64,000 nt of DNA, taken from NCBI GenBank assembly GCA_965644265.1, contig OZ286469.1, forward strand, positions 66,526,001 through 66,590,000, read 5' to 3'. Position 1 is the first letter of the stretch, and every line of letters starts with the position of its first letter. The notes under the pieces were generated by a model. That model saw only the letters and a program-made list of their open reading frames with translations. It did no database searches and was not told where the DNA came from. Source of the DNA: Glycera tridactyla (Eukaryota). The position numbers and the translations under genes are program-made. Below are positions 6,986 to 61,148 of this stretch, one piece after another.

Positions 6986-7144
6986 TCAGCTACTTCCACT
7001 TGACAACCTTTCTGTTCCCCATCATCTTGTGTTGAGGGGTTGTGAAAGTGATATCTGCAGGGGAGAGAACATTCAGCTTTCATTGACCAGGAACACATGG
7101 CATACATATTCCTCTGAGTTGATACATGCTGTTAAACGTCAAAT
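6986..7144 (+). mobile_element. Family C short retroposon, diverged copy
   Basis: tcagctacttccacttgacaacc...gttgatacatgctgttaaac matches the copies at 13809-14135 and 57551-57895. Confidence 0.75.
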
Positions 7145-7200
7145 GATTCAATATCTGTTTAGACTATGTTTTATGATCACCCATAACTTCAGTCTCGAAT

Positions 7201-7252
7201 AATCCTGACTGGATTGAAAAGAGATGTAAAGCCCTATTCAGTCAATCAATCA
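7201..7252 (+). mobile_element. 3' tail of a further LINE/SINE family
   Basis: gatgtaaagccc followed by caatcaatc, resembling the GACGTTAAAC+tetranucleotide tails of families A-C. Confidence 0.35.
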
Positions 7253-7693
7253 GTTTACTGAAGTCTTCAAATGATGTTCAAATTTGCAAATGCCAGTTCT
7301 TACGACTTCTATCTACAGAAGTTATGTCTTGGTCATTTCCGAATCAGTTCAGTCATCTAAAGAAATGAAATTGGACAGATTTTGGGATCAGGTACCGGTA
7401 TCAGATGCCCAGGATATTTTACTATATGAATGAATGAATTCATAGTGCTGCCTTCATCTAGGTGTCGATTTCAGGAGAATGATAGCAGACTTGCCAGAGA
7501 AACATCATTGTAATTATGAAAAGACTATCATGTCTTATCAGGTTCTTGTCCTCTGTTTGAATTAGGAATCTTTTCACAGGTGTATGCATGATTTCTGAGA
7601 GTTGTTTTGTAAAGGCTATGCATATTAAATGGGTGAATTGTGGTTGCAAATGTGTTGTTCTTGGTTCGAAGACGATCCATGATGAAGATGATT

Positions 7694-7768
7694 CACCCTA
7701 CTTCGGAATGATTTGTTGAGACGTTTCATCATGTTTCCTCACGTCTCAACAAATTATTCTGAAGGGTG
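7694..7768 (+). other. Long stem-loop (pre-miRNA-like geometry)
   Basis: Perfect 14-bp stem ATTTGTTGAGACGT (7711-7724)/ACGTCTCAACAAAT (7741-7754), 16-nt loop, extended by 10 more pairs including two G:U. Confidence 0.5.
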
Positions 7769-8402
7769 TAAATTGGGGTTTGACTCAGAAGTTGGATGAT
7801 CTGTAACTCAGACACCATTCAACAAGTTATATGTGGTACTAACGTTCTCTTGCCTTTTCTGTCACTATTCAATCATCTTAGTGTGGAGGAAGTCATGCCA
7901 GTCATACGGTTATTGGAGGGGGGGGGGGGGTCATCTCTGAGTATTTATTATATTACAAGAGTTGAATTGTGACTAGTCTGGATCAGGATATATGTAGAAC
8001 GGTCCCCGTGGGATGGGGTGGAATGTGCCTGCAGTGTTTGTACTCAATGCTATGTGCGTCTCTGTGATATATGTATATATGTCTTGGTTTACACATAAAC
8101 TGCTGTGCATTTTGCCGTCACCTAAGTCATTTGTTTTATCCCATTGTTATCACTGCTATGTCTTTAGCATGTTTCCCTCACAGTTTATGTGTGTGCTGTG
8201 TGAAACAAGAGTACCTCATCTGTTATATATTTAGATATCAATGTGTTGTCAGCTGATGGTTGAATCTGGACAGGGATGAATGTGTGGCTGGTGCTTTGTG
8301 TCAACTATATGTCTCAAGGGTACAAGAGTCTTCTCAGACTTGCAGTAGTAAGGTGGAATGATTATAATGTTACTTTCTCCCATTCTCCTCATGCACGCCA
8401 TA

Positions 8403-8580
8403 CAGTGGAACCTGTATTAACCAATCACTGTATCGATCAACAACCTGTCCTATGCTGTCTTTTTTTCAATTTCCCTTTTTCAATTTCCTTTCATATGATC
8501 CACCAATATCAGGCATGCACCTGTCTTGAGCTCCCACTTTTTGGCTTCCAAAAAGTGTTTGCTTGATACAGGGACTACTG
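8403..8580. mobile_element. TA-flanked MITE (Tc1/mariner/pogo-type TIR), degenerate right end
   Basis: ta-CAGTGGAACCTG at 8401-8414; degenerate counterpart ttgatacagggactactg near 8563-8580. Confidence 0.4.
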
Positions 8581-8884
8581 TTGTTATCCCGGCACGTTCA
8601 TAATGGATGATACATATTTTGGTGAGTAAATTCATGCCAGATGGGATTTTAAAGTGGTACATGTAATTTTAAACTCCAGAAATGCTTGATGGAATGCTGA
8701 AGGTCGAATAAGGCACATGTAGCATTGTCATGATTATGTCATCATGGTCATGGATGGCGTTGCTTGATATATTATTCAAAGATGTCACTGACTGGGTACA
8801 AAGTATTTCGTTCCCATAGATATAAAACACATCAGAAACATCATTCCTTAATCTGGTAGATATCAATCAGTAGATATTGCAAGT

Positions 8885-9060
8885 AATGAGCCCTTCGACA
8901 AGAGACCACCTTAAATGTTAGCAAGGAATGGTCTCTCAAAACAGGTGGTCTCTTATCAGAGGTATATTTGATTATGATAAATACAGAAGCTGCCCTGGAA
9001 AAGCGGTCTCCTGTTGGAGATGGTCTCTCGTCCAGGGTTCTCTCATTGCAGGTTTCACGG
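8885..9060. mobile_element. MITE with internal gaggtggtctct repeats
   Basis: Right end gcaggtttcacgg-ta; internal sequence similar to 58994-59172 and 59270-59451. Left end unclear. Confidence 0.6.
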
Positions 9061-10875
9061 TATTGATATTCATTTGACAGTTTCATCATATTTAACTGAC
9101 TTACTTTGCAGTTAAGAGTCCCCAACTTGCTGACTAAAGCATGTGTCATACCTTACCTGCCTCATACTGTTGATATTTTATGAACAATTCTTCTATATCT
9201 TTGTAGAAATCAAGTGTATGATTGACCTTAGAACATCATGGACAAATTTGAAACCTGTCTGAATTTATTAGAGACATGAATTCATGGTCTGAATTCACTG
9301 TCTGAATTTCATTCATTTTCTCTGCCAGGGATGCACAGTCAGTCCTTCATCAGTTTAGAATCATGACTGGATATTGGGATGAAGGACCCAGCTTTTGCCA
9401 TTTTGCTTTGGGAAACATGCACATATATTAATTGAATGACTCTTATTGCGAATGTCAGCACCTTATCATGTCATCCTTGCGGAATTCAGTGTTTCTCCAT
9501 GGTGCATCACATGATTTTCGCCATAATTCAGGGTCCTTTGTTTCTTATATTTGTAATTAAATAATATATGTACTTGGTGTAATTTTGTTCACTGATCGAA
9601 GTGGTGCAACTAGAACCAACAGACCCTTGAATGCAAATATAGGATGGTATGTTCAAAGGCACCTCTCAATTATATGGTATATTTGGTAACTTCATCATCA
9701 GTGTAATCCATCAGAGCCATTACCCGCTCATTCCTAATGCTTGTAATGGTTGCCATGGACAACACCCAAAACTAGCTGTATCAGAACAAGAAGTGCTATA
9801 TATTCATCAAGTATATCCATGAAACACTTTAAACGTATTGCCTGAGTTCATGTTAATGATATTCTCGCATTTTTGTTCAGAATTATAGTGTGTATTGTAT
9901 CCATGCCACTTGCACTTCTGTGGGTGTCCGAACATCATTTTATGTGATGCTTCTCTGTATTGAGAACTATCCATCATGTGTGCATGCAAGCATACGCATA
10001 CATACACATGAGCACAGCTTGTAGCTCCCCGCTAATTATCACATGAATGTCCTCGATGCAAGTCTACAACTCATGTGATTAAGCTTGTTCACATGTTAGT
10101 CTAGTTAGCTCATAATCTAAAATGCTAAGTTTGAGTAACTAATGTTGCATTTAGTGCATTATCGCTATGTTGTTAAAACAGATGAGTTAATGGTAGTTAC
10201 TTACCATGTTTGTAGCTAAGATCACTAGAGCACAGTATGCAACAATTTTGTGGATACGTGACTGTTCGAACATGTTAGACTTAGCAATACATGTGCCGGT
10301 TCTGTGTCTTAACTGGTCTCCGAGGAATTATAGGGTATTCCAGCACCTGTCATGTGTGTGGGCCATGAACTTATCAACTAACATAGATTTCGATATATTC
10401 AGGCGGTGAATTGCAATCAATTTCTACATGATTTCCCACCCACTAGGTGTGATGAACACCTATTTTCAGTTATTAAAGTGGAAAAGGATTAGTTTGAAAG
10501 TTCATGGTCACAGAATAATTGGTGCTCCCCTTGTGATAATTGATTTGCTAGTGTCAAAATTATTCCATCATTTTCTGGCATGGCACTGATTGTGTGACTT
10601 GTATCAACTTGTCCATATGATCCCGACCAAATAAGCACCATTGCTCCAAATCCCAACCTCTGTCTACAAGATTATTTCAACCCATTCTAATCTATTCAGT
10701 CAAATATACCTCTAGTTTGCACCTTGGCCTATTTTGTCAATACTCCACCTTTGTGAGAAACATTGCTTCAGGCATTAATGCTCGCTTATCGATTCTGTGG
10801 TTCGATATATGATACATAGAAGTCTCTATATATATGTACCACAACCTTTCATCTCTGCCCCTCCCCCCCAATATA

Positions 10876-11130
10876 TTGTGTTCAGGGTCTGTGAGTGGTA
10901 CTTGCTGGGGGAGAGAGCTCTCATAGATTTGCAATAGAAGCATACATGTTGTAATCCCAGTGGGTTGTAAAATGCCATTCAACCCTTGTCAACCAGCCAT
11001 ATGGCTTCATCCTTCCCCAATCAGCCATCTTCATTCTTCTGGTTCCCCCTCATCGTGGGATCAGGGTTTGTAAGAGGGAGGTCTGTTGGGGACAGAACAT
11101 GCTGCTTTCAGATCAGAAACACACAGCATG
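10876..11130 (+). mobile_element. Two old family C fragments (10876-10986, ~11065-11130)
   Basis: ttgtgttcagggtctgtgag...taatcccagtgggttg...atgccattcaaccc and cagggtttgtaagag...gaacatgctgctttca...aacacacagcat align to the C consensus. Confidence 0.55.
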
Positions 11131-12134
11131 CATGATATTCTTGGTTTACACACATTGAGCTCCTCCCTACCCTGCCAGTAGAATCCACTCATTATCACTC
11201 ACTAATATCCGAAAAAGGCTCCACAAAATTTCACAATTTCACACCGCACATGAAGATGAGGCAGCCAAACAGGCCATGGTACTATTTCTATGTGGCACCC
11301 ACACTGTGAATGTTGCATGAAATTTACACTTTTTTTCCACTTGACGGTTTAAATGTACTCAAATAATTCTTCAATAGTGACACATATTCAATTGTTGCGG
11401 ATTTCACTGGAGCACATCCACAGGTTTCATGTTGAAATGCTGCCGATCACCAAAGATAAGATTCTAAAACATGCACGCAAGGTTTTCAACTTAACAGATG
11501 TGTATGATTATAATCTGCAGATTACAGCAGTATAGGGGAGATTCCACTTGTGATATATCAGCCAGTACCAACCAGTGAGATTCTCATTGTATTCATGTGC
11601 TTCATTTTGAATGATATCAGTTGCTTTCGTTTCATTTCCACATCTACACATAATGTCAAGTAGATTGTCCCATGATATTTCTCCAAGCCAATCATTGATG
11701 TATAGACAGATATCAGTTGGCCAAGTAGATTGGAATTTTTGAGAAGAAATGTACTGGTATTTATCGTTTTGTCCCACCACGTCAGTGTTTTATACATTAT
11801 ATGCATGTTTCTGTAAATAAGGGCCTGTATTGAAGAATGCAATGTGTTTTCACAATATGACTTAAAATTGTTGATGTTTGAAATAGTGAGATATTTATTT
11901 GTTTCTTTTGAATATCTGTTTAAAATAAAAATGCTGAAGAATTTTGACTGGTGCCTTTGTTATTTTCTGATTGAATGCCTTGATAATATGAACACATACT
12001 TGTGTATAATAATGTTCACATGTTCACTGCTAATATGTTACCCTTCGCAATCTTTGAAGCATGTCATATTCTAGTCATAATTACACATATCGGCACTAAC
12101 ATGGCATCGCTATAGAGATTCAGTCCCAAATGTT

Positions 12135-12490
12135 CCATGACACTGAGTGTCTAGACATTTTGATCATTTCATTCTCCGTGGGGGACCCAAAAGTAGAAGT
12201 ATTGAATGATTTCTCCCATGTAATTTGCACCCATGCCAGTACTGCCCAGTTTTTGTCGTGTGTGATATATATTGGGGCCTCTACCAATCTGAAATGACAC
12301 ATTGTGTGTCTGTGAATTTCATAAACTTTCGTAATTTGATGATCGAGGAAGAGAAAGCGGATGATCCCACCCATGACATGTGTCTGTGAATTTCATTTAT
12401 TCACCTTTCTTTGGGACCCTAGAGGAAAAGTTAAGTGACCCTACCCATGGCCATTGCTTTGACGTCTTGATGTAGCCCAGGTGGTGCCCA
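12135..12490 (+). mobile_element. Cluster of 3-4 degenerate family A fragments
   Basis: gaaatgacacattgtgtgtctgtgaatttcataaa (12291), gatcccacccatg, gtgtctgtgaatttcat, and cccatggccattgc...tagcccaggtggtgc. Confidence 0.65.
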
Positions 12491-12659
12491 CTGGACAATT
12501 GAGAATAGACATAAACTCCATGCAGACCAGGCGAGTACTGTAATGTAGAGAATTGTACAACGTAGGATACATCGGCTGATAGAATTCATTGGACTTGATA
12601 CCTCATCTTCGACTATAACCTGTAGAATGTTCGTTGCAGCTAACTGAAATAGGGCTCCT

Positions 12660-12760
12660 TGTCTGCAGGGGAGAGAGCATCTAGCTTTCATTTACCAGGA
12701 ATACACGGTATACAAAATCCTGTGGGTTGATACATGCCGTTAAACCTCAAACAAACAAAC
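12660..12760 (+). mobile_element. Family C short retroposon
   Basis: gtctgcaggggagagagcatctagctttca...aatcctgtgggttgatacatgccgttaaacctcaaacaaacaaac. Confidence 0.85.
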
Positions 12761-12804
12761 ATTTCTTTTACACACCCAAGGTAGAGAATATCAAGTGGGG
12801 GAAT

Positions 12805-12962
12805 TGAGTGTGTGACATTGTCTGTGAATTTCATAAATTTTCGCCTTCTGTTGGGGATCCAGAAGGAGGAGTCTCGAATGATCCCTCCCATGCCCATCGC
12901 ATAGGCGTCACAATATAGCCCAGATGGAGCTGACGTGACGTTAAACCCCCCACAAAAAAAAC
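12805..12962 (+). mobile_element. Family A short retroposon
   Basis: Full A body (ccttctg...cagaagg; cccatgcccat; cgtcac...gtgacgttaaac) with an A-rich tail. Confidence 0.9.
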
Positions 12963-13417
12963 ATCATATCTTCTGAGCCACTGGTTCCAGCTATCGGGAG
13001 ATAAAGTAGAGGTGTCTTGAATATTACCATTGTAATAGGGCTAGGACGGAAACATATGCAACATAAGGAAGTGGTCAAGATTCATCAGTGTGAGCCCACC
13101 TGTTTCGCAATGAAATGACTTGGAGAGCCTTGTTTTGTCGCATTTGCAGTTGATGACTCTCCTTGTTAGACAAAGTGTGAAAGACGGTGTCACAGTAACT
13201 CAGCACTGACAAAATCGTGGATTCATATATCATCTGAGCTTGTTTACTTCCCTTGCCTCAGTAAGCATATAGAGAGGTGGACTAGCCTTATTTGAGTTAT
13301 ATGACACATGACTTTCAGAGGATAGACTTGAATCCAGCATGAACCCAGGTATTCAAATTCATTCACAACTTCCAATGTCTCATCGTTCATCGTGACATTC
13401 AGTGGCTGTTACTGGGC

Positions 13418-13476
13418 TCAGTCCGATATAACCCAAGCGGGTTTAAGTGACGTTAAACTCAAACAAACAAACAAAC
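13418..13476 (+). mobile_element. Family B 3' tail only
   Basis: tcagtccgatataacccaagcgggtttaagtgacgttaaactc(aaac)n, same as the end of the 16146-16364 copy. Confidence 0.85.
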
Positions 13477-13558
13477 TAGCTGTTGTCTACCTCCAAAAAG
13501 CTTTGCCTTTCGTACATCGAGAAAAAGCTTATTTGTATTCAGCCACTGGAGAGAACAG

Positions 13559-13653
13559 TGGAGAGAACATCTAGCTTTCATTGACCAGGAACACACGGCA
13601 TATATAATCCTGTGGGTTGATACATGCCGTTAATCCTCTAACAAACAAACAAA
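13559..13653 (+). mobile_element. Family C short retroposon
   Basis: gagagaacatctagctttcattgaccaggaacacacggca...tgccgttaatcctctaacaaacaaac. Confidence 0.85.
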
Positions 13654-13808
13654 ATGCAAAACGTGGGTACCCGGCACAGCATTCCTGGGTTACTAGGGCT
13701 GCGACTAGGTTTACTAGGTTGTGTGATGGCATTGCACTGCAAGCATGGGGCAAGCCATGATTGTGAAGCTGGTTTGAAGTTGACATTTCGTTATTGAACA
13801 CATTGTTT

Positions 13809-14135
13809 GAGTATTCTCTTAACCTATGCTTTTCTTTGTTTCAAGTACTGCGCTTTGCGTCAAAAAAAGCATAGCCATCAGGCTTGAGTGTTAGCTTCCA
13901 GCCATTTACATAGTTAGATATGCCATCATTAGGTTATATATGTCTTTTTTGTAGAGTTGGTAGAGGTGTGTCTGAACCATCAGCTACTTCCACTTGACAA
14001 CCTTTCAGGTTCCCCATCATCTTGTGTTCAGGGTTTGTGAGAGTGATGTCTGCAGGGGAGCGACCATCTAGCTTTCATACATAATCCTGTGGGTTGATAT
14101 ATGCCGTTAAACCTCTAACAAACAAACAAACAAAC
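13809..14135 (+). mobile_element. Family C long copy (~330 bp)
   Basis: Colinear with 57551-57895 from gagtattctc to the (aaac)n tail. Confidence 0.85.
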
Positions 14136-14860
14136 CTCCGAAACCATATTTGCTGTGCTTATTTACAAGTCTGTCACGATTCATGGTATTGTAGGCCTTT
14201 GCAAGGTCCAAAAAGGTGAAAGCAGTAGAATATCCATCATCCATTATCTGTGAATTGAATCAATGCTGACTCTGGAATGTTTTGGTCAAAATCCAGACTG
14301 GAAGAGGGTCAGACTATCATTCAAGAGGAGATACTCGTATAGCTGAGTGTGCATAATTTTCTCTGCAATTTTCGAAACAAATGGTAATACTGAAATTGGC
14401 CTGTGGTTTGATGGATCCGAGCGATGGCCATCTTTGAATAATGGTGTGACTTGAAAGGTTGTCCAACTTTTAGAGACCAGAGAAACCAGTAGACTTGCTT
14501 TATTTCATTTGAAATAATAAATTTTCGAATTTATCTACATCTGGCATCATGAATTTGAAACTCAGGTGTAGAATTGATTTTCATTGTATGTATTGAATTT
14601 ATTGGCCATATCTCTCGCCAGGCGAGTGCTGTGTCATCGTGTGTGTTGAAGGTGAGTGCATGTTTTTGTTTTAGTTCGTGAATGCGAGGATTCTCCTGCA
14701 ATATATGACTCCTTTCTCGTTAGTGGACAGTGGAAACCACAGCGTAGCTATTAATACTGGCAACGTTGCGGTGCCCAATGTATTGAGCTATTTTATTTGC
14801 TTCAATTCCGCTATGGACGAGTTTCTTGATAGCCCTTTTTCTCACACTGTGGCTGTTATA

Positions 14861-15038
14861 CAGTCGAACCTGTCTATAAAGACCGCCTTCGGTGGCATCA
14901 AAAAGTGGTCTTTATAGGCAGGTGGTCTTTATAGAGAGGTCATTTACTGTTGAAAATACTACCACGGTCGCAGCTCAGGGTGGTCTTTATAGAGAGGTGG
15001 TCTCTATAGAGAGGTGGTCTTTAGAGCAGGTTCGACTG
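14861..15038. mobile_element. 178-bp MITE, TA TSD, ~28-bp TIR
   Basis: ta|CAGTCGAACCTG...CAGGTTCGACTG|ta; inserted in the Crypton ORF just upstream of HSVR. Confidence 0.9.
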
Positions 15039-15298
15039 TATTTCTGAGATTTCACCTTCCACACACATTCGTTTCATCATTTCGCCTGGTGTATGTTGCC
15101 CTCGAGGCTGGAACTTGTACCATTTCTTGCAGTCGATGATTGGTTGAGGATTTTCAATGGTAAAGCTCTTTGGTTTCAGACTGTGATTTTTGCAATTTAG
15201 AATGGGGAATCGGGGCTGAGCCTAGCATCTGGCCATCGCAAACGATACAAATTATAAGCAGTGATCATACATTTGGTAGGGTCTTCAACATAGGGGTA

Positions 15299-15463
15299 AC
15301 AGAAATGACACCTTGAGTGTCTGTGAATTTCATAATTTTCGCCTTCTGTTGGGGATCCATAAGGAGGAGTCTTGAATGATCCCACCCATGCCCATTGCAT
15401 GGGCGTCACAATATAGCCCAGATGAAGCTGACGTGACGTTAAACCCCCAACCAAACAAACCAA
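15299..15463 (+). mobile_element. Family A short retroposon
   Basis: 13-bp TSD CAACATAGGGGTA at 15286-15298 and 15464-15476. Confidence 0.95.
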
Positions 15464-16145
15464 CAACATAGGGGTATATGGTGGGTACAAAATGGCGAGT
15501 GTCAGTTGCATCTTGACGTGTATTCGTTAGACGCTCCCTCCACCTCAATGCTTCTTCCTCTGCCATCCTCTGTTACAATTTCTTCTAACTGCATATCACC
15601 CCAACACATCTGTCTAGATTCGTGGCTACCCCTGAGCCCCAGCAGTTAGTGTTCGGGAACCAAATACAATTTAAAAGGGCAGTTGCATTGTGCATGCCCA
15701 TTACTCCACGTCCCCATAGCAGATCAATAGTTTTCTCATCAATAGGTGAAGCTCTATCAGGTTTATTTCCTAGCCCTTGACTCTTTAATTGCTTCCTTTT
15801 GGCTGCCAAAACATCATGACTTGTGCTAAAACGTACATCTTGGACAATACAGCATGGATAGCCTACACTCCGCAAGTATCGTGAAAGAGACCTATAAAAA
15901 GAGGTCAAAGAATCAGGCTTGTACTCGTTCCCGTCCGGCTTTTTGAAAGACATCATCCACTCGCCTATTGATGTGTAGCTTCTCAGGTTCGATGTATTTA
16001 ATGTCACAAGTCATCCCATGTTCGGAAGCCAGCCACGAGCGGAATTTAGATATACACGAATCAGTCTTTTTCTTGGTGCCTGGGTTGCTTGGGCATTGAT
16101 AAACTCACGGAGACCGGCTTCTGCCCCGGTATTGCCTGACGGCCC

Positions 16146-16364
16146 AACCCAGTGCATGCCGACTGGGATATCAAAGGCCGGCCGTGTATTTAGGAGCCTT
16201 TTGCTTATACGCATGTTAAAGATCCACTGCTGTCTTTCGCAAAGAGTAGGGACGGCCCCCAGCAGGCAGTGACTTTTCTTCAGCATTTTCAGTTTTTTCA
16301 GTCCGATATAACCCAAGCGGGTTTAAGTGACATCAAATTAAAACAAACAAAACAAACAAACAAA
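16146..16364 (+). mobile_element. Family B (Nimb LINE 3' UTR) copy
   Basis: 11-bp TSD CCTGACGGCCC at 16135-16145 and 16365-16375. Confidence 0.95.
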
Positions 16365-17123
16365 CCTGACGGCCCCGGTGAGGGATCACTTTGCGGCGGG
16401 GCACTGCTACACCTCGCGGTCTCCACATCTTGCAAGGAGCGTCTTCCGTGTGATGCTCGGATGGTGTCAGGATGGGTTCACATAGCGGCGGGCCACTACT
16501 TGCGGTCTGCTCCTTCCCGGTCTCAACGTCAGCAGCGTTCGCGTGCCCCACTTCAACCACAATAAATTCATCTCCTTCACATCTGATCATCGCCTGAAAC
16601 ACACAAGTTAATTTCGCTATTTAATGTAGGATTCATAGTGGCTTAGAGATCGGATAAGTATTTACCACAATTTTGATGAATCAGTTGAATAGTTTTCTAT
16701 TTGAGACACAAAACAATTCTTCTTTAGACATTTTGCTGTGTTATTCTTTTCATTCCTCAAAATTCTGACAGGTTAAATGTTGGCAAGTTCACCAGTCCTC
16801 CTTGCAGCCCGCTTTGCATCTTTGAATTCATGTAGAATAGAAATATACTCATCATTTAATTAACCATGGAGAATTTTCTTCTCGCACATGTATGTTTTTG
16901 AATGGGCAACTGCATCACACCCACTCATGAGGCCATAAAACAATGGTACCGAGAGGGGTCATTATCAGGTACATGCAGGTCATCAATAAATGTTTGCTAA
17001 ACGTGTGCAGTTTGTCTTGGTTGACATGTATCATGATCTGTATGATCTTCTAGAAAAGCGTCGTAACTGGATGGAACTTCAGTGGTAATTGTGATTTTTG
17101 TTTTGGGGGTGTGTTCGTGTGTG

Positions 17124-17460
17124 TTTTTTGTCCCGCCTGCTTTAGAAGTGGTGGGACATAGATGTTACCACTCTGTTGGCGTCGTCGGCGGCGGCGGCGA
17201 CATAGTTAACATTGGTTGAAGTCTTGGTTGAGATTTTGGTGAGGTTTTTTCTCTGAAGCCTCACTCGATTAATATTGTACCAACATTCTTGAAATTTGGT
17301 ATACATATGCATCAGTAGTTGGACAATATTATAGGCATATCTTTTTCCATATTCCATCAAGTATAATTGAGTAATTTCGAGGGAGAGGAAGACTTTGAAG
17401 ATTTGTGAGTTTGGAATTTTTGAGAAAGCGAGGCCCAATAGCTGTCTGCATTGTGTAAGA
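17124..17460. mobile_element. Possible Helentron-associated (HINE/DINE-like) non-autonomous element
   Basis: T-run followed by hairpin tgtcccgcc...ggtgggaca and a cgtcgtcggcggcggcggcg microsatellite, a layout typical of HINE-like elements. Right end uncertain. Confidence 0.4.
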
Positions 17461-18917
17461 CACGGAAATGTACACCACCTCTCTTGGCTTGCCTTCCTTT
17501 GCTATGTGAGGCTTTCCGTAACTTACACTGCTTTTGTCCTTGTCTGAGTTATGTAACATAGTTGTTGATTACTCTGAGCCCTCAACCATTGGATAGATAG
17601 GGGAGGTTGGTGGAGGTGAGATTTGATGATTTCTGCCTTCAGCAGAGGTAAGTCATAGACATATTCTGTTGTTGCCATCATTCTCATCATCAACATGGAT
17701 TAAGATCCCAATTATGATTCCAGTTAGTTTTTGTCCTGCCGGCTTTATCGCTCCATGGAGCAGCTTGTTGTACCTAGGTGTGTGCGGTTTTGTGTCTATG
17801 TGTGCTTGTTCTTGTTTAGATGAGTCATAAGTTCATATAGTATTGACCATTTCAGGATGACGTATCAGAGACGAGTTTTCTTGTTCTTCCTATCGGAGAG
17901 TCATTAACAGCATGGCAAGATGGAGCTCTATCAGTCACTCTTTTGCATGATGAGTAGGAGTTGATCATAATATCTCCGATGGCTTGCTGTTCCGATTTGT
18001 CCCACCTGACTCTAGTCTGTCAGTCTGTGTACTTAATTTTCAAATTATCGTGATATTAGATATTGGGTCATAGATATAGACGCTAAACAGTTTGGAAAGA
18101 TGATATCTCATATTCTTAGTGGGTATCAGTCAAGTAGGATTTCATGCATTACCGATTTTCTGTTGCTGGTATGACTTTTACATTGTTGAATGGAAAGAGC
18201 GAATGATATACATCATGGTGGTATACGTTGTACGGTACAGTCAGCTTTCGCAATCCGATTCATTAATGTGGATATTCTCTACACTTCTTGCATTTTCTGT
18301 AGAGATGGGTTTCTCGCGAGGGATTGAGATTTGGGCAGCTTTTAGACGCAAGTCATTTGTTCCATCAACCAACTCTGTGGATCAGACGCGGGTGTCTGTC
18401 TGAGTAATAGCTGTTCTGATTTTTGGATAGATAACTTGAGTAGATGCATTTTCAGGGGTTCTATAGGGGCATCGAATGTTGAGTCTGTACTCAATACTTC
18501 TGATAGTTGTGAGCGAGGAGTTAATGCTTCTCGAGAGTAGATAGATGCTGAGGCTCTGGTCATTTATCAAATTCATTACTGACAGCCGTTTTATGTGATA
18601 GACATTGCTGAGCTCATCAGTGAGCTTCCAGAATGTCATTTACAAAAATCGCACATTGAGTGTCTGTGAAATTTTATAATTTCAACATATTTGCGCTGAT
18701 GTGATGTTGAACCAAAACCAACCATCTTGAATTTCTTGTCATGTCCCGAAGCCTGGAAGTATTTGGCTGATATTTGAATGTTTGACTTTGTCAGTCTGGT
18801 CATGGGCATAATTGTATGAATGTCATAGTCCACATTGCAATGACTTGTTGCCCAACTTTCCGAAGTTTCACTTATTTGTATGGAGTTGAGGCACTTTTGA
18901 AGGGACTGGTAGTGTTC

Positions 18918-19199
18918 ATATTTGATTATTTGCATGAATTGGGAATATTTAGACAAATATGAATCGTGTGCATGCTAACCCAGTGCATGCCGACTGGGAT
19001 ATCAAAGGCCGGCCGTGTTGATAGGAGTCTTTTCCTTGACGCACGTTAAAGATCCACTGCTGTCTTTCGCAAAGAGTAGGGACGGCCCCCGGCAGGCAGT
19101 GACTCTTTTCTTCAGCATTTTCAGTTTTTCAGTCCGATATAACCCAAGTGGGTTTAAGTGACGTTAAACTTAAACAAACAAACAAACAAACAAACAAAC
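18918..19199 (+). mobile_element. Nimb LINE 3' end (last ORF2 codons + family B UTR)
   Basis: atatttgattatttgcatgaattgggaatatttagacaaatatga (IFDYLHELGIFRQI*) then the UTR; absent from the duplicate at ~21550. Confidence 0.9.
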
Positions 19200-50486: not shown

Positions 50487-50686
50487 CCAATGCATGCCGA
50501 CTGGGATATCAAAGGCCAGCCGTGTACATAGGAGCCTTCCTGTACGCACGTTAAAGATCCACTGCTGTCTTTTGCATAGAGTAGGGAGGGCCCCCGGCAG
50601 GCAGTGACTCTTTTCTTCAGCATTTTCAGTCCGATATAACCTAAGCGGGTATAAGTGACGTTAAACTCAAAGAAACAAACAAACAA
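50487..50686 (+). mobile_element. Family B copy
   Basis: 13-bp TSD CATATTGATACAA (50474-50486, 50687-50699). Confidence 0.95.
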
Positions 50687-50780
50687 CATATTGATACAAG
50701 GTACATTCATATAGTGAATACAAGCGATCAGAAACGAGTCTGATATATCTGCTGAGACCTGCGATCTGACTTCCTACGTA

Positions 50781-50954
50781 ATAACAGAAATGACACCTTG
50801 AGTGTCTGTGAATTTCATAAATTTTCGCCTTCTGTTGGGGATCCAGAAGGAGGAGTCTTGAATGATCCCACCCATGCCCATTGCATGGGCGTCACAATAT
50901 AGCCCGGATGGAGCTGACGTGACGTTAAACCCCCAACAAAACAAAACAAAACAA
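50781..50954 (+). mobile_element. Family A copy
   Basis: 12-bp TSD ACTTCCTACGTA (50769-50780, 50955-50966). Confidence 0.95.
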
Positions 50955-51124
50955 ACTTCCTACGTAGTCTTTACTATGGTGTTGTATAATACTATATATA
51001 ATAAAGAATTTATTTCAAATTATATATTTACTATTGTAATAGAATGATCTCCACCCATGACTGGCTTCCAATTGCAATATCCTGAATTGAGCGCCACTTT
51101 AGCCAGTGGAGAAACAGTAGTATC

Positions 51125-51874
51125 TAATCAAAGATCATCAAAAGACTGTTAGATTTTGCTGGATTCCGAGCCATATTGGAATTCCTGGAAATGAGGCAGC
51201 CGATAAAGCGGCCAAAAGGGCTCTGGGTTTGCCAGTCACTAAGATGGAAATCCATTATTCTGACTTCAAACCAAGAATAAAGCTCTATATTGACCAACTC
51301 TGGCAGAATGAATGAGGAACCAAAAAGCAGAATAAATTATATAGCATCAGACCAAAACTTTAGGACAGATTCCCTGTGAGAACTATGAAAAGAAGAGAGG
51401 AGATAGTACTTTCCCATCTGAGGATAGGACATACATATCTCACCCATTCACACCTGAAAAAACAAGGCAATCCTGATTGCTTTGCATGCGGATGCTATCT
51501 CACAGTTAAACATTTATTGCTCGACTGTAGAAAACTATCGCATCTAGAGTAAAGTATTACAATGTTGAAAATATGACGGAACTTTTCATGAAAATCGACC
51601 CAACAGACATATTTGATTATTTGCATGAATTGGGAATATTTAGACAAATATGAATCGTGTGCATGCTAACCCAGTGCATGCCGACTGGGATATCAAAGGC
51701 CGGCCGTGTTGATAGGAGTCTTTTCCTTTACGCACTTTAAAGATCCTCTGCTGTCTTTCACAAAGAGTAGGGACGGCCCCCGGCAGGCAGTGACTCTTTT
51801 CAGTTTTTCAGTCCGATATAACCCAAGTGGGTCTAAGTGACGTTAAACTTAAACAAACAAACAAACAAACAAAC
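51125..51874 (+). mobile_element. Nimb/I-clade LINE 3' end (RNase H C-terminus, CCHC knuckle, UTR = family B)
   Basis: [21 protein letters not shown]...LRIGHTYLTH...CFACGCYLTVKHLLLDC...DYLHELGIFRQI*, then UTR and (AAAC)n. Confidence 0.92.
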
Positions 51875-51969
51875 CAGCCCAACAAAATAGCTGAAGTAAA
51901 AGGAGATTCTTGTATCGGGATTGATGATGAGAGTTTCATCCTTGTGCAGTTTGGCGTTCATCAGCCCAA

Positions 51970-52499
51970 TTCTCGTCATGATTAGGACTGCAAACACCAA
52001 CCCAGTGCATACCTACTGGCCTTTGATATCTCAGGCGGCATGCTCTGGGTTTGTGTTTGCAGTCTTTCTGTATGGACGTAAAAGATCCACTGCTGTCTGT
52101 CGTGAAGAGTAGGTATCACCCCACGGCGCTGGTGCCTCTTTTCTTCAGCATTTTCTGTTTTTCAATCTGATATGACCAAAGGTGGTTGAAAGAACGTTGA
52201 GCCCTATACAAACAAACTGCAAAACAAACAAACTGCGAAATGCTGGATCCATCAATCAGAAATCGTGATGATTAAGACTGCAAACACAAACCAGTGCCTG
52301 CCGACTGCGATATCAGAGGCCGGCTGTGTATATAGGAGTCTTCCTGTATGCATGTAGAAGATCCACTGCTGTCTTTTGCAATGAGTAGGGATGGCCCCCG
52401 GCGGCGTGCCTCTTTTCTTCAGTATTTCAGTCCGATATAACCAAAGGTGGTTGAAAGGACGTCAAATCCTAAACAAATAAACAAACTGAATAAAAACTA
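51970..52499 (+). mobile_element. Two family B2 copies with an alternative 5' segment (51970-52235, 52262-52499)
   Basis: Both start tcgt(c/g)atgatta(g/a)gactgcaaacac. The second has TSD GATCCATCAATC(A/G)GAA at 52246 and 52500. Confidence 0.8.
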
Positions 52500-52505
52500 G
52501 ATCCA

Positions 52506-53460
52506 TCAATCGGAAGTGCAATGGAAGTTTCTCCAACCATTGGTATCATAGTAGGAAATCAAACAACGGTATCCTGTTATTCCTCTTTCGCTTGCGCAAA
52601 TTGTAGATCTCAAGTTCTGTTCTGCTTTGACTTTTCTTCCCGCCACAGACACTGATTGCGCATCCTTCCCTGCTAGTCTTAAATGTGAATATTTATCAGA
52701 GACTACCGAATGAAAGGATTGTGCGCGTGAATTGCAAGGGCATTTGATCTCAAGTAGGCCTTCCCCACAACATTTGCATGTCACGATTCCATCTTGGGAG
52801 CCACCTATGAAAGGCTCTGTCCTTGATATATGGAACCCAACTTTTTAACTTTGATGTTTGGTGGGATTGTTTCATCAATTTAGCATGTGAATTTCGAGCG
52901 ACACTTTCCTTTGTCTTTCCATATGTGCATGATTCCCTTTCAAAACCATCATGATATCCCATAACATCAGTTACAACACTGTTAACTTCACAATGTATTT
53001 TATCCTTTTCATCCACATGATGAATTGCATCATGGATGACTGAAGCTGTTATTCTTCCTTCTCGCTTGTCAAACCAAAATGTTTATATCGATTGTCAACA
53101 AGTTCTACTCTCAATCTACTCATTTCATCTTTTGAATGACTCACATGTGTAACAAGTTCCTCGGCATGAGCACAATTATTTGAGATCATCTTTAATGCAT
53201 CAGGGATGGATATTATTCTCCCTTCAGTTGTGATGACCTCTTGGCCATCAACATGCTAAATGTCAGGGATTCTATGTTCAACTTTGAGCTCGAAGAATTC
53301 CTTGCCGAATTTCAATATGGCTGCATTCTGCTCACCACCAACTAAATTGTTCAGTCACTCAAGCTCCATATCCACAAGTGTTTCGAGTCTTCAATGACAA
53401 ACAGCACATGGATCAAAAGTTCTCCTGCTGCTGCCACTTTCATCACTTTCAGCAATAGAT
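52506..53460 (-). pseudogene. YqaJ/lambda-exonuclease-like (PD-(D/E)XK) ORF relic, probably transposon-borne
   Basis: WFDKREGRITAS (~53041-53080), YGKTKESVAR, GFHISRTEPFIGGSQDGIVTCKCCGEGLLEIKCP (~52738-52840). Confidence 0.8.
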
Positions 53461-54863
53461 GAAAGTGCATGCCGACTGGGATATTAAAAGCCGGCCATTT
53501 GTACAGGAGTCTTTTCTGTACACACATAAAAGTACCACTGCTGTCTTCCGCAGAGTAGGGATGGCCCCCGGCAGCAGTGCTTTTTTTATTCAGTATTTTC
53601 AGTCCAATATGACCCAAAGTGGTTGAAAGGACATTAAGCCCAAACATACAAACAAACAATCGGTCAATGATCTATTGAAGATGAATTGGGGTCTGACTGT
53701 CCCCTTGTATTACACTGGGATATTATGTTGGGGAGCACCTCTGGATCGCAATGGGCTTGGCTTTGAGAAATTTGGTATGATTGTGAGCTCATTTCAATGA
53801 TTGGTATTGCCTCATTCAGTTCTCGAGAGAGCGCAATACTTGGACGTAAACAAATAAAGCAGCCATTATCCAGAAGTAGATGAAGAGTGAGTTGGTGCAA
53901 ACATGAAGTTTGGGCAGTGGATGGTGTGTGTGTTGTAATGTGCCTCATAGTCGTTTCTGATGTCATTGAGAATGTGTTTGATTATGATTTTGAAGTTGAT
54001 ATTGAGAATTAGAGCTGGTGCTTGCTGTTCACACCGGGTGGCCCATTCGCTGCCATGAAACATCCTTCTATCATATGCATATTACTATATTCCAGGGATA
54101 TGGTGCAACTCGGCAAACTCGACAGTCATTCCAATTGTGCAGAACATGGGCAACAATCATGTTTCGTTATAATCTGCTCGACCTTTGATTCAAATACTGA
54201 GATGGTCAAAAAAGCAATTTCCATCAGCAGGAACCAGTATCTGATTACAGTGAACTTCATTGATCACCTTCACTGAAGCTCCTGTCAGAAGGTCTTTATA
54301 CAATGCGAACAGAGATGCACTCAGAGCTATATGTGCATGATTCACTTTTAAAACCTTCATAATATCCCATAACATCAGATACAGCACTGAACTTCACCAT
54401 GTATTTCATCCTTTTCATCCACATGATGAATTGCATCATGGATGACTGGAGCCGATATTCTGTCTTCGCTGGTCAAACCAAAATGTTGATATCGATTGTC
54501 CACAAGTTCTACTCTCAATCCACTTTATATTTCATCTTTCGAATAACTCACATGTGTAAAAAGTTCTTCGGCTTAAGCACAATTATTTGGAATCATCCTA
54601 AATGCATCAGGGATGGAAATTATCCTCTCTTCAGTTGTGATGACCTCTTCTTTGGCACCAACATGCAAAAGGTCAGGAATTCTATGTTCAACTTCGGGCT
54701 CGAAGAATTCTTTGCCAAATGGCTGCATACTGCTCACCACTCACTGTTATCATCAAAACTTGATTGCAGAAGAGCCGAGAAGAAGGCGTTCACTGATTCT
54801 CATCGTCATCGACCAACCTGCCCCAAGCAGCGGTGCAGAGAACCATAACCTTGTCCTCGTCCT

Positions 54864-55560
54864 GAAAGGCATCTTGAGTTTCTGTGAATTTCATATTTTT
54901 TCACCTTCCGTTTGGGACCCAGAAGGAGTCTGGAAGATCGCACCCATGCCCATTGCATGGGCATCACAAAATAGCCCAGATGGTGCTGACATGACTTTAA
55001 TCGAGAATCAACCAACCAACCAAACCGTCCCGACTGCTAGATTTCGAAATGGTTGCTCAATATATCAGCTGTGCGATCTTCAACTACTCGAAAGAAACAC
55101 CCTACCAGAGTCTTTCTCCACTTGGCCGAAGACCCAACATCCATCGACTCAATGACCTTACCAAATTTACTCTCATCAATTTTGACAACTTTCCCTATGA
55201 CGACAATTTGTTCATTTTCTCTTATGATGACCTCACTGCAGACTTCTCTCGCGAAATGACACCAGTCTACTACAGTTTCATTGCTGATATCCAGCCAAAT
55301 CTCAATGCATGAACTGGGGAGCTTTTATACCCAATGATAAGTCAACATCAATATAGCTGATATTGACAAATGAGATCCTTCAAACCCCAAACCTTCTCGG
55401 ATTGACAGCACATCTTGTTGCTGAACCTTCTTCTTTCCATAACAATAGTCCTTGAAAGTAAAACTCCTGTCAGATCCCACCCATGCCCATTGCATGGGCG
55501 TCACAATATAGCTCAGATGGTGCTGACGTGACGTCAAACCAGAACCAACCAACCAACAAC
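54864..55560 (+). mobile_element. Two family A copies (54864-55026; 5'-truncated 55473-55560)
   Basis: A body and gacgt(c/t)aaaccagaaccaacc-type tails. Confidence 0.85.
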
Positions 55561-55959
55561 ACAACAGTAGATACACTTCTTACTGAAATTCCCAATAAGT
55601 CCCAAATCAACAATCCAGCTCAGTAAATAATTGAAATCCAGGCATATCCCATGCAAATCATCATACTTTAGGTGAGGCATGCTGCTGTCAAAGAGCACAT
55701 GGCACTGTTTTTTGGGGTTATCCAAACCTCCTCCCCTGAAACAGCAAACTAATCAGATTCTACTGTAGCTCCATTAACCTAGTCATCAAATCACTGCTAA
55801 CTAGGTCATAACATACCGTATCATGCAAATGAGGCCACCTTGAATTCTCAAACCTTCACAACAAAACAAAATGGATGCCATCACATCGGATCTTCACAGC
55901 TCCAGCATTCATTACATGCTTCATTCATTCTAGTTTTGGATCATTGGTCTACCATGTAG

Positions 55960-56160
55960 AGCACACTTTGCCAGAAAGTTTCGACCAGGAAAGGAGGGTC
56001 CCACAAGAGAGCATTTTATCGGTCACCCTTTTTAGCATTAAAATGAATAATATCGTTGAATGCCTCTCCCAGGACACCAATTGCTTCTTATACGTAGATG
56101 ACTTTCTTATTTGTTATAGAGCTAGTCAAGTTTGTGTAGTGGGGAGGAAACTACAACGAA
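55960..56160 (+). pseudogene. Nimb/I-clade RT fragment
   Basis: VPQESILSVTLFSIKMNNIV...LYVDDFLICY. Confidence 0.85.
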
Positions 56161-57229
56161 GAATTCCTTGCCAAATTTCAATATGGCTGCATACTGCTCA
56201 CCACCTGCTAAATCGTTCAGTCACTCAAGCTCCATATCCACAATTGTTTCGAGTCTTCAATGACAAACAGCACATGGATCAAAAGTTCTGCTGCTGCCAC
56301 CTTCATCACTTTCAGCAACAGATGAAAGTGCATGCCGACTGGTATATCAAAAGCCAACCGTTTGTACAGGAGTCTTTCCTGTACGCACATAAAAGTACCA
56401 CTGCTGTCTTCTGCAAAGAGTAGGGACAGCCCCTGGCAGCAGTGCCTTTTTTCTTCAGCCTTTTCAGTTATTCAGTCCGATATGACCCAATGTGGTTGAA
56501 AGGACGTTAAACTCAATCAAACAATTGATCAATGATTTATCGAAGATAAAGTGGATTCTGGCTGTTAGGCATTGACCTGTCCTTTGTATTACACTGGGGT
56601 GTATTGTTGATGAGCACTTCTGGATCTTAGCAATGGGCTTGGCGTTGTGAGAAATTCGGTATGATTGTGAGTTCATTTCAATGGTTGGTATAGCTTCATT
56701 CAGTTCTAGAGAGGGCAATACTTGGACGTTGTAGAGTAACGTGGCCATTATCCAGAAGTAGATGAAGAATGAGTTGGTGCAAACATGAAGTTTGGGCAGT
56801 GGATGGTGTGTGTGATGTAATGTGTCTCATAGTCGTTTCTGATGTCATTGAGAATAATACCTGTGATTTTGAAGTTGATGTTGAAAATTAGAGCTGGTGC
56901 TTGCAGCTCACACAGGATGGCCCATTCACTGCCATGAAACATCCTCCTTTCATATGCATATTTCATTATACCAGGGATATGGTTCAACTTGGCCAACTAC
57001 ACACAGTCATTCCAATAGTGCAGAACGTGGGTCACCATCACGTTACGTCATGATTACAAATGAAAAGAATGAGAGAATAAGTATTTTGATGCTGTGAAAA
57101 TGACTGTGCTAGACTGAAATCAACATTTCATGACACTGTGAAGTGAACCATATAGCATCTAATTAAGTCCTTGAAATTCTTTGGTAGATGAGATAATAGC
57201 TATTATCGTGTCTGTACCCACTGTCCAGC

Positions 57230-57535
57230 GATGGGAATCTGTAGTCTAAACCATCTCTGTAAAACAATTTGGCATCTTTTGCAACGCAGTCGGCCAGCTG
57301 CACAGTCAATCCTGTCATTGCCTCAGGGAACAAATGATCCAAACCAGGGAATTTTCTGCTTTGAAATATTCCACGAGCATCCTGTGTACCGTCAGCTCCA
57401 ACTGGCGGCTAGTTTTATATTTGGTGACAGTTTATTTTGATGAGTGCATTCATCGAAATGATTGGTGCACACTGAACATCTGCATGTAGCCCTGCACACA
57501 TCACAGCATGTGTGGTGTCCACTCTTCCCTGATGA
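57230..57535 (-). pseudogene. Possible RecQ-type C-terminal Zn-binding relic
   Basis: GHHTCCDVCRATCRCSVC (~57460-57520) resembles the CCDxC RecQ zinc motif. Confidence 0.45.
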
Positions 57536-57550
57536 TTGAACACTTCGGTC

Positions 57551-57895
57551 GAGTATTCTCCTAACCTAATATTTTCTATGTGTCAAGTGCTGCGCTTTCG
57601 AAAAAAAAATGCATTGCTATCAGGCTTGGGTGGTAGCTTCCAGCCAGCTATATAGGCAGATATGCCATCATAGGTTTATTATGTATATGTTCAGATTAGG
57701 TAAAGGTGTGTTTGAACTGTCAGTTACTTCCACTTGACAACCTTTCAGGTTCCCATCATCTTGTGTTCAGGGTTTGTGAGAGTGATGTCTGCAGGGGAGA
57801 GAACATCTAGCATTCATTAATCAGGAACACACGGCATAAATAATCAGGTGGGTTGATACATGCCGTTAAACCTCGAACAAACAAAAACAAAAAAC
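57551..57895 (+). mobile_element. Family C long copy
   Basis: Colinear with 13809-14135. Confidence 0.85.
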
Positions 57896-58993
57896 TCCCC
57901 TGATGGGCTGCATCCAAAATATGCCAGAAGATGATTTCTGCGGCATGACGAGATGGTGCAGAATTGACGCATTGATTCTTGCAGATGTTTCATTCGAAGC
58001 AATATCTGACATGTTGAAGTATATGGAAAACATTCTGCAGCAATGGTTAATGGTGTTATGCAAAATTATCAATCAGGATTTCAGTCAATCAGTGACAAGG
58101 ATAGTCCAAAAGTAATATTTGTGAGCAATGTATGTATCAGGTGGCTAAACTCATGCTTCCTTCATTCACTTGCATTTCTCTCAGATTCAGGGATGATTTG
58201 CACACAATTGATCACTGAAAGAGTTTTAATTCCACCCAATTGAGCTGTACTGACAATTCTTTAAGAATCCGTCTGTATTCTGAAGATACTTCGTAGTGTC
58301 ATAGTAGCGTAGTATAGCCAATTCTTTTGGGGCCATTTGGCTCATAAATTTGTAGTATAGTGAGAATTGTACATAGTTGACCTTTACATTGGCCAAAGTA
58401 TTTAGGAGCCAGTTGGTCCCTAATTTTGAGTATTTGGTTGCCAATGCTAAATTATTCAAGTTCGACAACTGTTTGAAAATATTTTGTATTCAGAAGGTAC
58501 CTTATAGAATAGCAGTATAGCTAAATTGTAAATAGCTGGAGTCTATATTGGCCGAAATGTCTAGGGGCCGGTTGGCCCCTAGGTTCAAGTATATGGTGGC
58601 CAATACTAAATTTCTCAAATATTAGTGTAATCTGTGTCAATTGATTGTCATTCATGCTGGAAGCTGTTTATTGAATGACATTTTCCTTGTTCTTGTATAG
58701 AATTACCATGTTTTACAGGAGCACACCTCTGTGTGTAATATTTACTTACTCTCCATGCTGGTTGGTGGCTTGATATGTATGATCTGCCTCACATCAGGTG
58801 CATCCACTCCCATCCCATATGCTTCTGTGGCAAGAAGTAATCGGAGCATGCTCTTGGTGTCCTTCATTTGAGGTGTTATGATAGTCTTCATCTGTCAGAG
58901 GAGATAATGTGATTTTTTTCTAAACCGCTATACATGTACACATATTACCTTTGATATCATGTGGCCTAGAAGTGCGATGACTTTCACTTCATA

Positions 58994-59172
58994 CAGGGAA
59001 ACCTGTGACAAGCAACTGCCCTTAATGTCACCAAAAAGCGGTCTCTCAAAAGAGGTGGTCTCTTGTTGGAGGTATATTTGACTATATCAATTGAAAAAAT
59101 GCTGTCAAGAAAAAGCGGTCTCCTGTTGGAGGTGGTCTTTTGGCAGGGGGTCTATCGTCGCAGGTTTCACTG
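58994..59172. mobile_element. TA-flanked MITE
   Basis: ta|CAGGGAAACCTG...CAGGTTTCACTG|ta. Confidence 0.85.
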
Positions 59173-59269
59173 TATTGATAAGTAAAGCAAGCCCCAGTTG
59201 AGTTAGAAGAAACCTGATTCTTGTTTCACCGAATTCATTCATGATCATGGTCCCACTGATGGATATGTA

Positions 59270-59451
59270 CAGTGAACCCTATTATGAGAGACCACACTTA
59301 ATGTCTTCATAAAGTGGTCTCTCAAACGAGGTGGTCTCTCATTAGAGGTATATTTGACTATGTTGAATAGAAAAGCTGCCCTAAAAGACTAGTTTCCCAT
59401 CGGATGTGGTCTCTTGTCGGGGGTAGGGGGGTCTCATCGCACCTCTCACTG
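59270..59451. mobile_element. TA-flanked MITE, same family
   Basis: ta|CAGTGAACCCT...CTCTCACTG|ta with internal gaggtggtctct repeats. Confidence 0.75.
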
Positions 59452-59729
59452 TATAAAGTGATTCATTCCAAAATACTATGCTCTCTACGTGTTTTTATGC
59501 CACATTGTGCAATTATGAGTGGCTGAAACTATACATTCCATGCCTGAAGTTAGGTTAGCCTCACATTCTCATCTGATTTATGTATATTAGAAGCTCTAGT
59601 CAGTCATTCATACATGAATTGTTGGTTTTTGTTGAAGTCTTTGTGAATATGTATGTAATTCATGCATAGCACTTCATAATTATGCATAACCACTGATACT
59701 GAGTCAAGTCATTGATGAATGGTTGTTCA

Positions 59730-61148
59730 TTAAATGTACATAAGTTGGGCCTGCTGCAGCTGCAAGATGTGGGACATCTCTCGCTGCTGGTTGGTTGATT
59801 CCATGACCTTGTGGAGCAACTGAGTGATTTCCCTCTTTCTAACGCTATGATTTGTGAACTTTTGCTTGATACCACCTTCATCGCACATGTGCCTCATCAT
59901 CTTGCCAATCGTATGTTGGCCCAATGCTTGTGCTTTCTACCAAATTTTACCAGGAACAACAGGTTGGGGTTTCTCGATCGAGAATGACTTGGGTGATAAA
60001 CCATGATTGAGTCCGAGATAGTAGGGAGAATCTGGTGATAACAAAGATACTGGTCGTTGTGATTTGAATAGCTTAATAGCATTCACCATACATTTTTTTG
60101 GGTCAGTTTTGTTAGGGTAGATGGTAGGGATGAAATCTCCAGTATCTGAACCGTCCTGCCGTGTTTTTGTCTGCCGTTCTGTCCAACGAAGGACTCCCTC
60201 CACTTCACCCTCTTCATTGACAATTTCATCCATATTCAGATCTCCCCATTTCATTTAACGACTCATGACTTCCCCTTAGGCCAAGCTGCTGAGTGTTCTC
60301 GAACCAAACCATGTTCAACAATGCACTGACGTTGTGTGCTCCCATGACTCCTTTCTCCCTCAATGTATCCAAAGAAATATCATCAAGAGCCATTGCCCTG
60401 TTAGGCCTGTTGCCCAAAACCTGCCCCTTCGATTGCTTCCTTTTAGCAGCTAGCACCTACCTGCTTGTATAGAAAATGGGATTTTGAATGATACAATGTT
60501 CGTAATTTGCTCGAAATGACACTTTGTGTCTGTGATTTTCATATCATTTCACCTTCAGTTTTGGACCCAGAAGGAGGCGTCTTGGAAGATCCCACCCATG
60601 TCAATTGCATGGGCGTCACAATATAGCCCAGATGGTGCTGACGTGACGTTAAACCATGACCAACCAACCAACCATTCGTAATTTGCATCACGGAGATAGC
60701 AAGATAGTGGTCGATAATATGCAGTTAAGCTGTCTGGTTCGTAGTCTGAGTTGTCTTCCTTCTTCAATGCAAGAATCCACTCGCCAATATATGTATCAAG
60801 TGCAGCGCCATTGATATTGGTAATGTCACAAGTAAGTCCATGTGTACGGCCTAACCAAGTACGGAATTTGAAAACACATGCGCTGGCCTTCCTCTTAGTA
60901 CTCGCATTTGCTTGCTTTGTGATGAATTCTCGTAGATTTTCATGGCCGCCGTTAACAACGGCCACCTCCTTGGATGGACCAGCCACAGGCTCAGCATCAG
61001 GCTCGCTTTCTCCCAAGGGCCGGGCAACAGGCTCGCTGCTCACCGTCTCCGAGTAGCCATGCTCGTTCGCGACAAGTACATCTACGGTAGGATCGATTAC
61101 AACGAACTCACTTCCATCATACTCGAGAGTCACCTCATCTGCAAGCAC
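59730..61148 (-). mobile_element. Second Crypton-like DUF3504 YR element, pseudogenised
   Basis: GEWILALKKEDNSDYEPDSL; QLGLRGSHE; KWGDL; ERQTKTRQ; FIPTIYP; TNHSVRK. Homologous to 14670-16602. Confidence 0.9.
60511..60674 (+). mobile_element. Family A copy inside Crypton 2
   Basis: 12-bp TSD TTCGTAATTTGC (60499-60510, 60675-60686). Confidence 0.95.

Follow-up and report, generated by a model that had tools for sequence, protein, structure and literature searches.

Co-oriented domains of LINEs and SINE-like elements in the genome of Glycera tridactyla, with copies in sense where a host gene could be checked

The orientation of transposons relative to genes usually shows a weak antisense bias, which is read as a trace of selection. 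In the introns of mammals, fish, and flies, this orientation tracks the host gene over the transcription unit; the bias is normally antisense and few-fold at most. The present analysis concerns a 64-kb stretch of the 2.04-Gb genome of Glycera tridactyla (contig OZ286469.1, positions 66,526,001 to 66,590,000), hereafter the window, in which fragments of long interspersed elements (LINEs) and of units resembling short interspersed elements (SINEs) are densely packed in a single orientation. All positions are given in window coordinates, which extend into the flanks as negative and + kb values. The likeness to intronic bias is that orientation follows the host gene over a transcription unit, and the relics of long terminal repeat (LTR), DIRS-like, and DNA elements seem antisense-biased here as well. 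In contrast, the LINE and SINE-like copies lie in sense, at ~95-100%, and even the youngest copies conform without exception. The closest case found was that of cichlid SINEs, which are moderately biased toward sense (PMC4353498).

Other described systems resemble the locus in part. The flamenco type of PIWI-interacting RNA (piRNA) cluster shares the dense transposon fragments held in one orientation over tens of kilobases, but it collects all classes in that orientation, whereas here LINEs and SINEs alone are aligned, genome-wide and inside protein-coding genes. In human, a modest link of replication to the insertion strand of L1 has been reported. The likeness lies in a strand rule that a directional chromosomal process imposes on target-primed insertion at the scale of domains; the human preference is weak, whereas the one described here is near total and matches gene direction in 8/8 copies. 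Promoter-less non-LTR elements, such as R2 in ribosomal DNA and L1Tc/NARTc in the polycistrons of trypanosomes, are expressed only in sense within the host transcript (PMC3383444). The SINE-like units studied here carry no tRNA or 5S head, and sense placement would therefore serve them. R2 reaches its sense placement by targeting a specific sequence; the copies described here have diverse targets, no ribozyme was detected, and a dependence on co-transcription is suggested rather than observed. A literature search of incomplete coverage turned up no account of LINEs and SINEs with a sense bias that is near total and extends over domains.

Profiles of three SINE-like families, F1, F2, and F3, were searched on both strands with nhmmer --max (filters off), and the window yielded 57 LINE/SINE pieces on the + strand and one on the - strand. 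Self-BLAST of the window returned 323 direct and 2 inverted repeat pairs, and the LINE reading frames are also on + (a CR1-like element at 23993-29745, and fragments with reverse transcriptase (RT) and RNase H at 53.3-56.5 kb). In the 264-kb region made up of the window and 100 kb on each side, (AAAC)n runs outnumber (GTTT)n runs by 16 to 0, and the 3' motif CGTTAAAC occurs 27 times against once on the opposite strand. The nhmmer search of this region placed 74 LINE/SINE matches on + and 5 on -, with every match from -44 kb to +155 kb on +. To the right of this + domain, one LINE and one SINE lie on - between +157 and +162 kb; to the left of -46 kb, both orientations occur. An earlier note on this DNA, made by eye from the letters, had counted about 40 independent insertions in one orientation, and the profile search agrees: a sensitive search of both strands turned up a single 41-bp piece on -. 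Its statement that no reverse-complement copy exists is correct for LINEs and SINEs but not for other classes, of which five or six coding relics lie on - in the same range.

The three families (F1, ~280 bp, reference copy 18917-19199; F2, ~170 bp, 15287-15469; F3, ~350 bp, 13793-14139) end alike: a common short 3' motif precedes an (AAAC)n tail. Profile matches begin at many positions and finish at the 3' end, and this variable 5' truncation, the tails, and the target-site duplications are the hallmarks of retroposition by target-primed reverse transcription. An Rfam scan of the SINEs gave no ribozyme, tRNA, 5S, or snRNA match. F1 is also the 3' end of the LINE fragments carrying RT and RNase H at 53.3-56.5 kb. 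An intact LINE ORF2 of 1045 aa (Exo_endo_phos and RVT_1) lies on + at -56261 to -53127 (L005:3739-6873) and is possibly an active autonomous element; with the fragments that end in F1, it provides an autonomous partner with endonuclease and RT in this genome. The CR1/L2-like LINE, by virtue of its (ATTGT)n tail, belongs to a LINE lineage other than the SINEs' partner; its tail was found in 359 copies genome-wide, 180 forward and 179 reverse, none of them near the listed SINE positions.

All divergence classes of the copies, from <80% to >=95% identity to a consensus of the window's own copies, are 100% on +. The F1 copy at 18917 is identical to distant copies and therefore very recent. In the genome search with 18917-19195, each of the best 40 of 488 candidates was 99-100% identical and lay on the - strand of the genome; the copy in the window itself was absent among the matches listed, probably owing to the ordering of ties. 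Three F2 copies are directly preceded by a repeat of ~120 bp (-25278 to -25165, 41159-41270, and 47334-47456), which is inverted in the flank relative to the window copies and also occurs in two dynein introns.

The insertions are largely independent of one another. A 6.2-kb tandem segmental duplication accounts for only ~8 of the 57 pieces; some other pieces are split parts of one copy, and smaller duplicated blocks are also present. In most pairs, the self-BLAST similarity stops at the element borders, with 36867-49121 and some short blocks as the exceptions where it reaches into the flanks. The earlier claim that copies have their own target-site duplications is borne out clearly in five, with private duplications of 8-13 bp (F2 at 15287, 33384, 50780, and 60506; F3 at 57535); the duplications have no common motif and the targets are diverse. 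The closest relatives tend to lie elsewhere: F1 matches distant copies at 100% identity, and for F2 the identity is 97% to copies elsewhere compared with 84-96% inside the window. One F1 is nested in the (AAAC)n tail of another, which suggests priming on existing tails, a process that would add same-strand neighbors at short range.

The co-orientation is not confined to this locus. Genome-wide, the common SINE tail was counted 5051 times in forward and 5241 times in reverse orientation, so there is no global strand bias. Pair distances were analyzed for tail-pattern copies in the first 19 Mb of contig C1, a different chromosome, where the share of pairs on the same strand is 94% below 2 kb, 81-87% at 2-30 kb, 71% at 30-100 kb, and ~50% beyond 100 kb. 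Adjacent pairs closer than 30 kb agree in 41/50 cases (p=6e-6), and examples of one-strand runs on C1 are 12 + copies within 88 kb and 8 - copies within 66 kb. The block in the window is thus one dense case of a genome-wide regularity, in which target-primed elements lie in co-oriented domains of ~50-200 kb. The earlier note had proposed to follow orientation beyond the window; co-oriented domains occur throughout the genome, with overall strand balance. With the same co-orientation along 19 Mb of C1 and inside ordinary genes, the special undescribed system that the note suspected at the locus is not supported. The note's probability of 1e-12 for a shared orientation supposed independent 50:50 choices; because neighbors are co-oriented throughout the genome, that figure rests on the wrong null model.

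The polarity of the copies was determined where host genes of known strand could be located. Dynein heavy-chain genes were found by the AAA_6 profile, and 30 short loci of known strand were read in genome orientation. In the introns of six such genes, SINE fragments lie in sense in 7/7 cases, one of them a weak match (E=0.15). To the left of the window, three + open reading frames (ORFs) match CCDC142 in a Pfam scan of left-flank ORFs, with nothing on -; this gene has at least 4 collinear exons on + from -23152 to -15137 (L008-L009) and is the only copy in the genome. One of its introns, 568 bp long, consists mostly of SINE sequence, with the F1 copies on +. Altogether, intronic copies are in sense to the gene in 8/8 cases in 7 genes (p=0.008), and the + domain, which runs from ~-44 kb to ~+155 kb, takes in CCDC142. 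Where a host gene could be checked, the sense polarity is therefore the reverse of the usual antisense rule.

The other transposon classes face the opposite way. In the window, coding relics other than LINEs number 0 on + and 5 on -, compared with 57 on + and 1 on - for LINE/SINE pieces (Fisher p=9e-7). The 264-kb region has ~11 non-LINE coding relics on - and 2 on +, whereas its LINE/SINE copies number 74 on + and 5 on - (Fisher p=6e-9, or p=4e-6 when counted conservatively). If transcription runs on +, the non-LINE classes show the ordinary antisense bias. At 32001-34000, local GC is 0.49 with a GC skew of +0.35 on +, over the - strand frames of a DIRS-like relic and a proline/threonine-rich frame.

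We infer that the window is transcribed on +. Between -52 and +60 kb, unique sequence on this strand shows an excess of T over A and a slight one of G over C, as does the sense strand of the dynein genes. CpG is depleted more strongly between -100 and +60 kb than in the stretch from +60 to +124 kb. This CpG pattern fits a methylated transcribed body; it also fits the presence of young LTR elements on the right. The favored explanation is a domain-scale rule, by which LINEs and promoter-less SINE-like units sit in the sense of host transcription, and it is given slightly less than an even chance. Of the mechanisms weighed, insertion whose strand is biased relative to transcription is held to be the most likely, if tentatively. 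The first nick and priming would take place on the template strand, so that new copies land in sense, and copies without a promoter of their own could be re-expressed through host read-through. Insertion bias is preferred to selection because the youngest copies already show the full bias, the elements are small, and crude counts of poly(A) and splice motifs gave no excess on the antisense strand of the copies. One of the readings offered in the earlier note, strand-specific insertion tied to the direction of transcription or replication, appears to fit all observations and is the leading candidate. A more far-reaching version is doubtful: LINE insertion may be coupled to host transcription, with LINEs and their promoter-less SINE-like dependents landing almost only in sense and re-expression in host pre-mRNA closing a self-reinforcing cycle that would mark every transcription unit, a mirror of the vertebrate pattern.

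Several points weigh against the domain-scale rule of sense placement. Among 484 ORFs of at least 44 aa, Pfam scans of both strands of the window detected no host exon. The sequencing runs found, four small ones from a single study (word share 0.07), cover on 14001-20000 SINE and miniature inverted-repeat transposable element (MITE) repeats and none of the unique sequence; since they cover repeats only, they are silent on expression and strand. The base skew is confounded as a strand marker because the SINEs are T-rich on their own sense strand. The + domain crosses an LTR-rich stretch at +60 to +150 kb that is possibly intergenic, which fits replication direction as well as it fits transcription. 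The sample behind the sense polarity is small, at 8 copies in 7 genes, and we know of no LINE reported to choose the template strand. Finally, a second MITE family has the same orientation to the gene in 3/3 dynein genes, a small sample, as the window copies have to +; if a MITE is upheld as following the same gene-relative orientation, selection would be favored over an insertion mechanism.

Nearly as likely as insertion bias is the removal of antisense copies by purifying selection. This rival supposes that insertion is random with respect to strand and that antisense copies in transcription units are quickly lost, for example, via double-stranded RNA formed with sense copies or through unrecognized signals; as a full account of the pattern, it is considered possible but on the unlikely side. 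That intronic transposons acquire an orientation bias through selection is well established, and the non-LINE transposons here look classically antisense-biased, while a cut-and-paste family such as the MITE just described may obey the same gene-relative orientation as the SINEs. The quantities are less favorable: ~95% of antisense copies, each only 170-350 bp long, would need to be removed, from a strand with no excess of poly(A) or splice motifs. To our knowledge, intronic orientation biases in mammals reach a few-fold at most. Classical antisense bias grows with copy age, but here every divergence class is 100% on +, the youngest included, and a copy that is identical to its relatives conforms as well. 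In cichlids, SINEs are moderately sense-biased, and LINEs and LTR elements antisense, which adds weight to selection (PMC4353498).

A dependence on the germ-line replication fork, with the sense relation secondary to the co-direction of genes and forks, is improbable. Its attraction lies in the scale of the domains, ~100-200 kb, in the passage of the + domain across the probably intergenic LTR-rich stretch, and in the T>A and G>C skew on +, which also suits a leading strand. However, 8/8 sense copies in 7 genes would demand near-perfect co-direction of genes and forks, and the opposite bias of the non-LINE transposons is not predicted by replication alone. The human effect, moreover, is weak, and its polarity, with the nick on the lagging-strand template, predicts antisense copies in co-directional genes.

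The two explanations that tie the block to a - strand transcript, both put forward in the earlier note, fare considerably worse. A one-strand piRNA cluster transcribed on - and gathering antisense LINE and SINE sequence would suit the very dense, co-oriented fragments of several families, one of them very young, and the lack of a detected host exon in the window. It is nevertheless very unlikely, as the window's other transposon relics, five or six in number, are without exception in the opposite orientation, and the split of LINE/SINE copies on + from other classes on - is evidence against a one-strand piRNA trap. The co-orientation is, in addition, genome-wide and found inside ordinary protein-coding genes, where the copies lie in sense, and the neighboring gene is on +. 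Slightly less probable still is an intron of a - strand gene purged of its sense copies, as is canonical for vertebrates and insects. The - strand gave no host exon, its protein matches being to a YqaJ-type exonuclease, a Crypton-like recombinase, a DIRS-like RT, and a RecQ-like helicase that is multi-copy; the copies in 7 genes of known strand are in sense rather than antisense, and the only nearby host gene, CCDC142, is on +, so the polarity is wrong wherever it could be checked. Weakest of all, and hardly credible, is copying by local duplication or local re-insertion from one source with inherited orientation: the 6.2-kb tandem duplication, a few smaller ones, and the F1 in the tail of another F1 speak for it, but most pairs are alike only across the element with unlike flanks, copies have their own target-site duplications, and, decisively for its exclusion as the main cause, the closest relatives lie on other chromosomes.

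The features of the window are collected in Table 1. Matches to RecQ_Zn_bind and Helicase_C were considered as exons of a - strand host gene and rejected, as the flank contains multiple copies of the helicase, which shares only 46% identity with the window fragment. A 357-aa frame in the flank (L019:1241-2311, -) contains Helicase_C and a RecQ-type zinc motif and exists in at least 2 copies, 89% identical, beside LTR-element sequence, the paralogue lying at ~+127.8 kb; the RecQ-like helicase is possibly transposon cargo. MITEs of two related families, which have terminal inverted repeats of 14-15 bp and palindromic units inside, lie at 14858-15041, 8897-9068, 58991-59180, and 59268-59424, and the first family has very high summed contig depth in sequencing runs X1-X4. 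The MITE at 14858-15041 was dropped as a non-LINE control since it aligns in both orientations; being internally palindromic, it is uninformative as to orientation. A run of N occupies 5563-5718.

Table 1. Transposon-derived and duplicated features of the 64-kb window, ordered by position.
Feature	Position	Strand	Details and basis
LINE/SINE block	6934..60671	+	57 pieces of F1/F2/F3, ~40 independent insertions; nhmmer --max, self-BLAST, tail motif counts
Full F3 copy	13793..14139	+	Common 3' motif and (AAAC)n tail
High-copy MITE	14858..15041	.	Perfect 15-bp terminal inverted repeats; internally palindromic
Full F2 copy	15287..15469	+	13-bp target-site duplication
Crypton/DIRS-type recombinase relic	15588..16010	-	33% identical to DUF3504 + Phage_integrase frame at -72 kb
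Youngest F1 copy, LINE 3'-untranslated-region-type unit	18917..19199	+	(AAAC)n tail; 279 bp 100% identical to copies on many other chromosomes
CR1/L2-like LINE	23993..29745	+	RVT_1 E=1e-29; FP-like domain in ORF1; (ATTGT)n tail
DIRS-like RT relic	31963..32478	-	30% identical to RT at +69 kb
Tandem segmental duplication, 6.2 kb	36867..49121	+	36867-42915 vs 43036-49121, 90-96% identical; duplicates ~8 SINE pieces; self-BLAST
Sole - strand LINE/SINE piece	52013-52053	-	41-bp local inversion of F1 head; nhmmer --max
F1 nested in (AAAC)n tail of preceding F1	52241..52488 (region 52226-52488)	+	10-bp target-site duplication within that tail
YqaJ-type exonuclease relic	52509..53082	-	Non-LINE element
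Two I/Nimb-like LINE 3' fragments	53291..56532	+	RT, RNase H; each ending in F1 unit
Full F3 copy	57535..57898	+	8-bp target-site duplication
RecQ-like helicase relic	58745..58894	-	Multi-copy paralogues at +127.8 kb and +145.2 kb
DIRS-like element	60280..64000	-	Recombinase, RT/RNase H; continues to ~+70 kb; Crypton/DIRS-type recombinase relic part 60280-60824, RT from 62 kb

One-way transposon blocks in this genome should not be called piRNA clusters from the letters alone. The near-total sense bias, if true, would mean that insertion reads the direction of transcription (or replication), or that selection on orientation is far stronger than has been assumed. Either way, the orientation of LINEs and SINEs would provide a marker, readable from the assembled genome by itself, of the direction of germline transcription in Glycera tridactyla.

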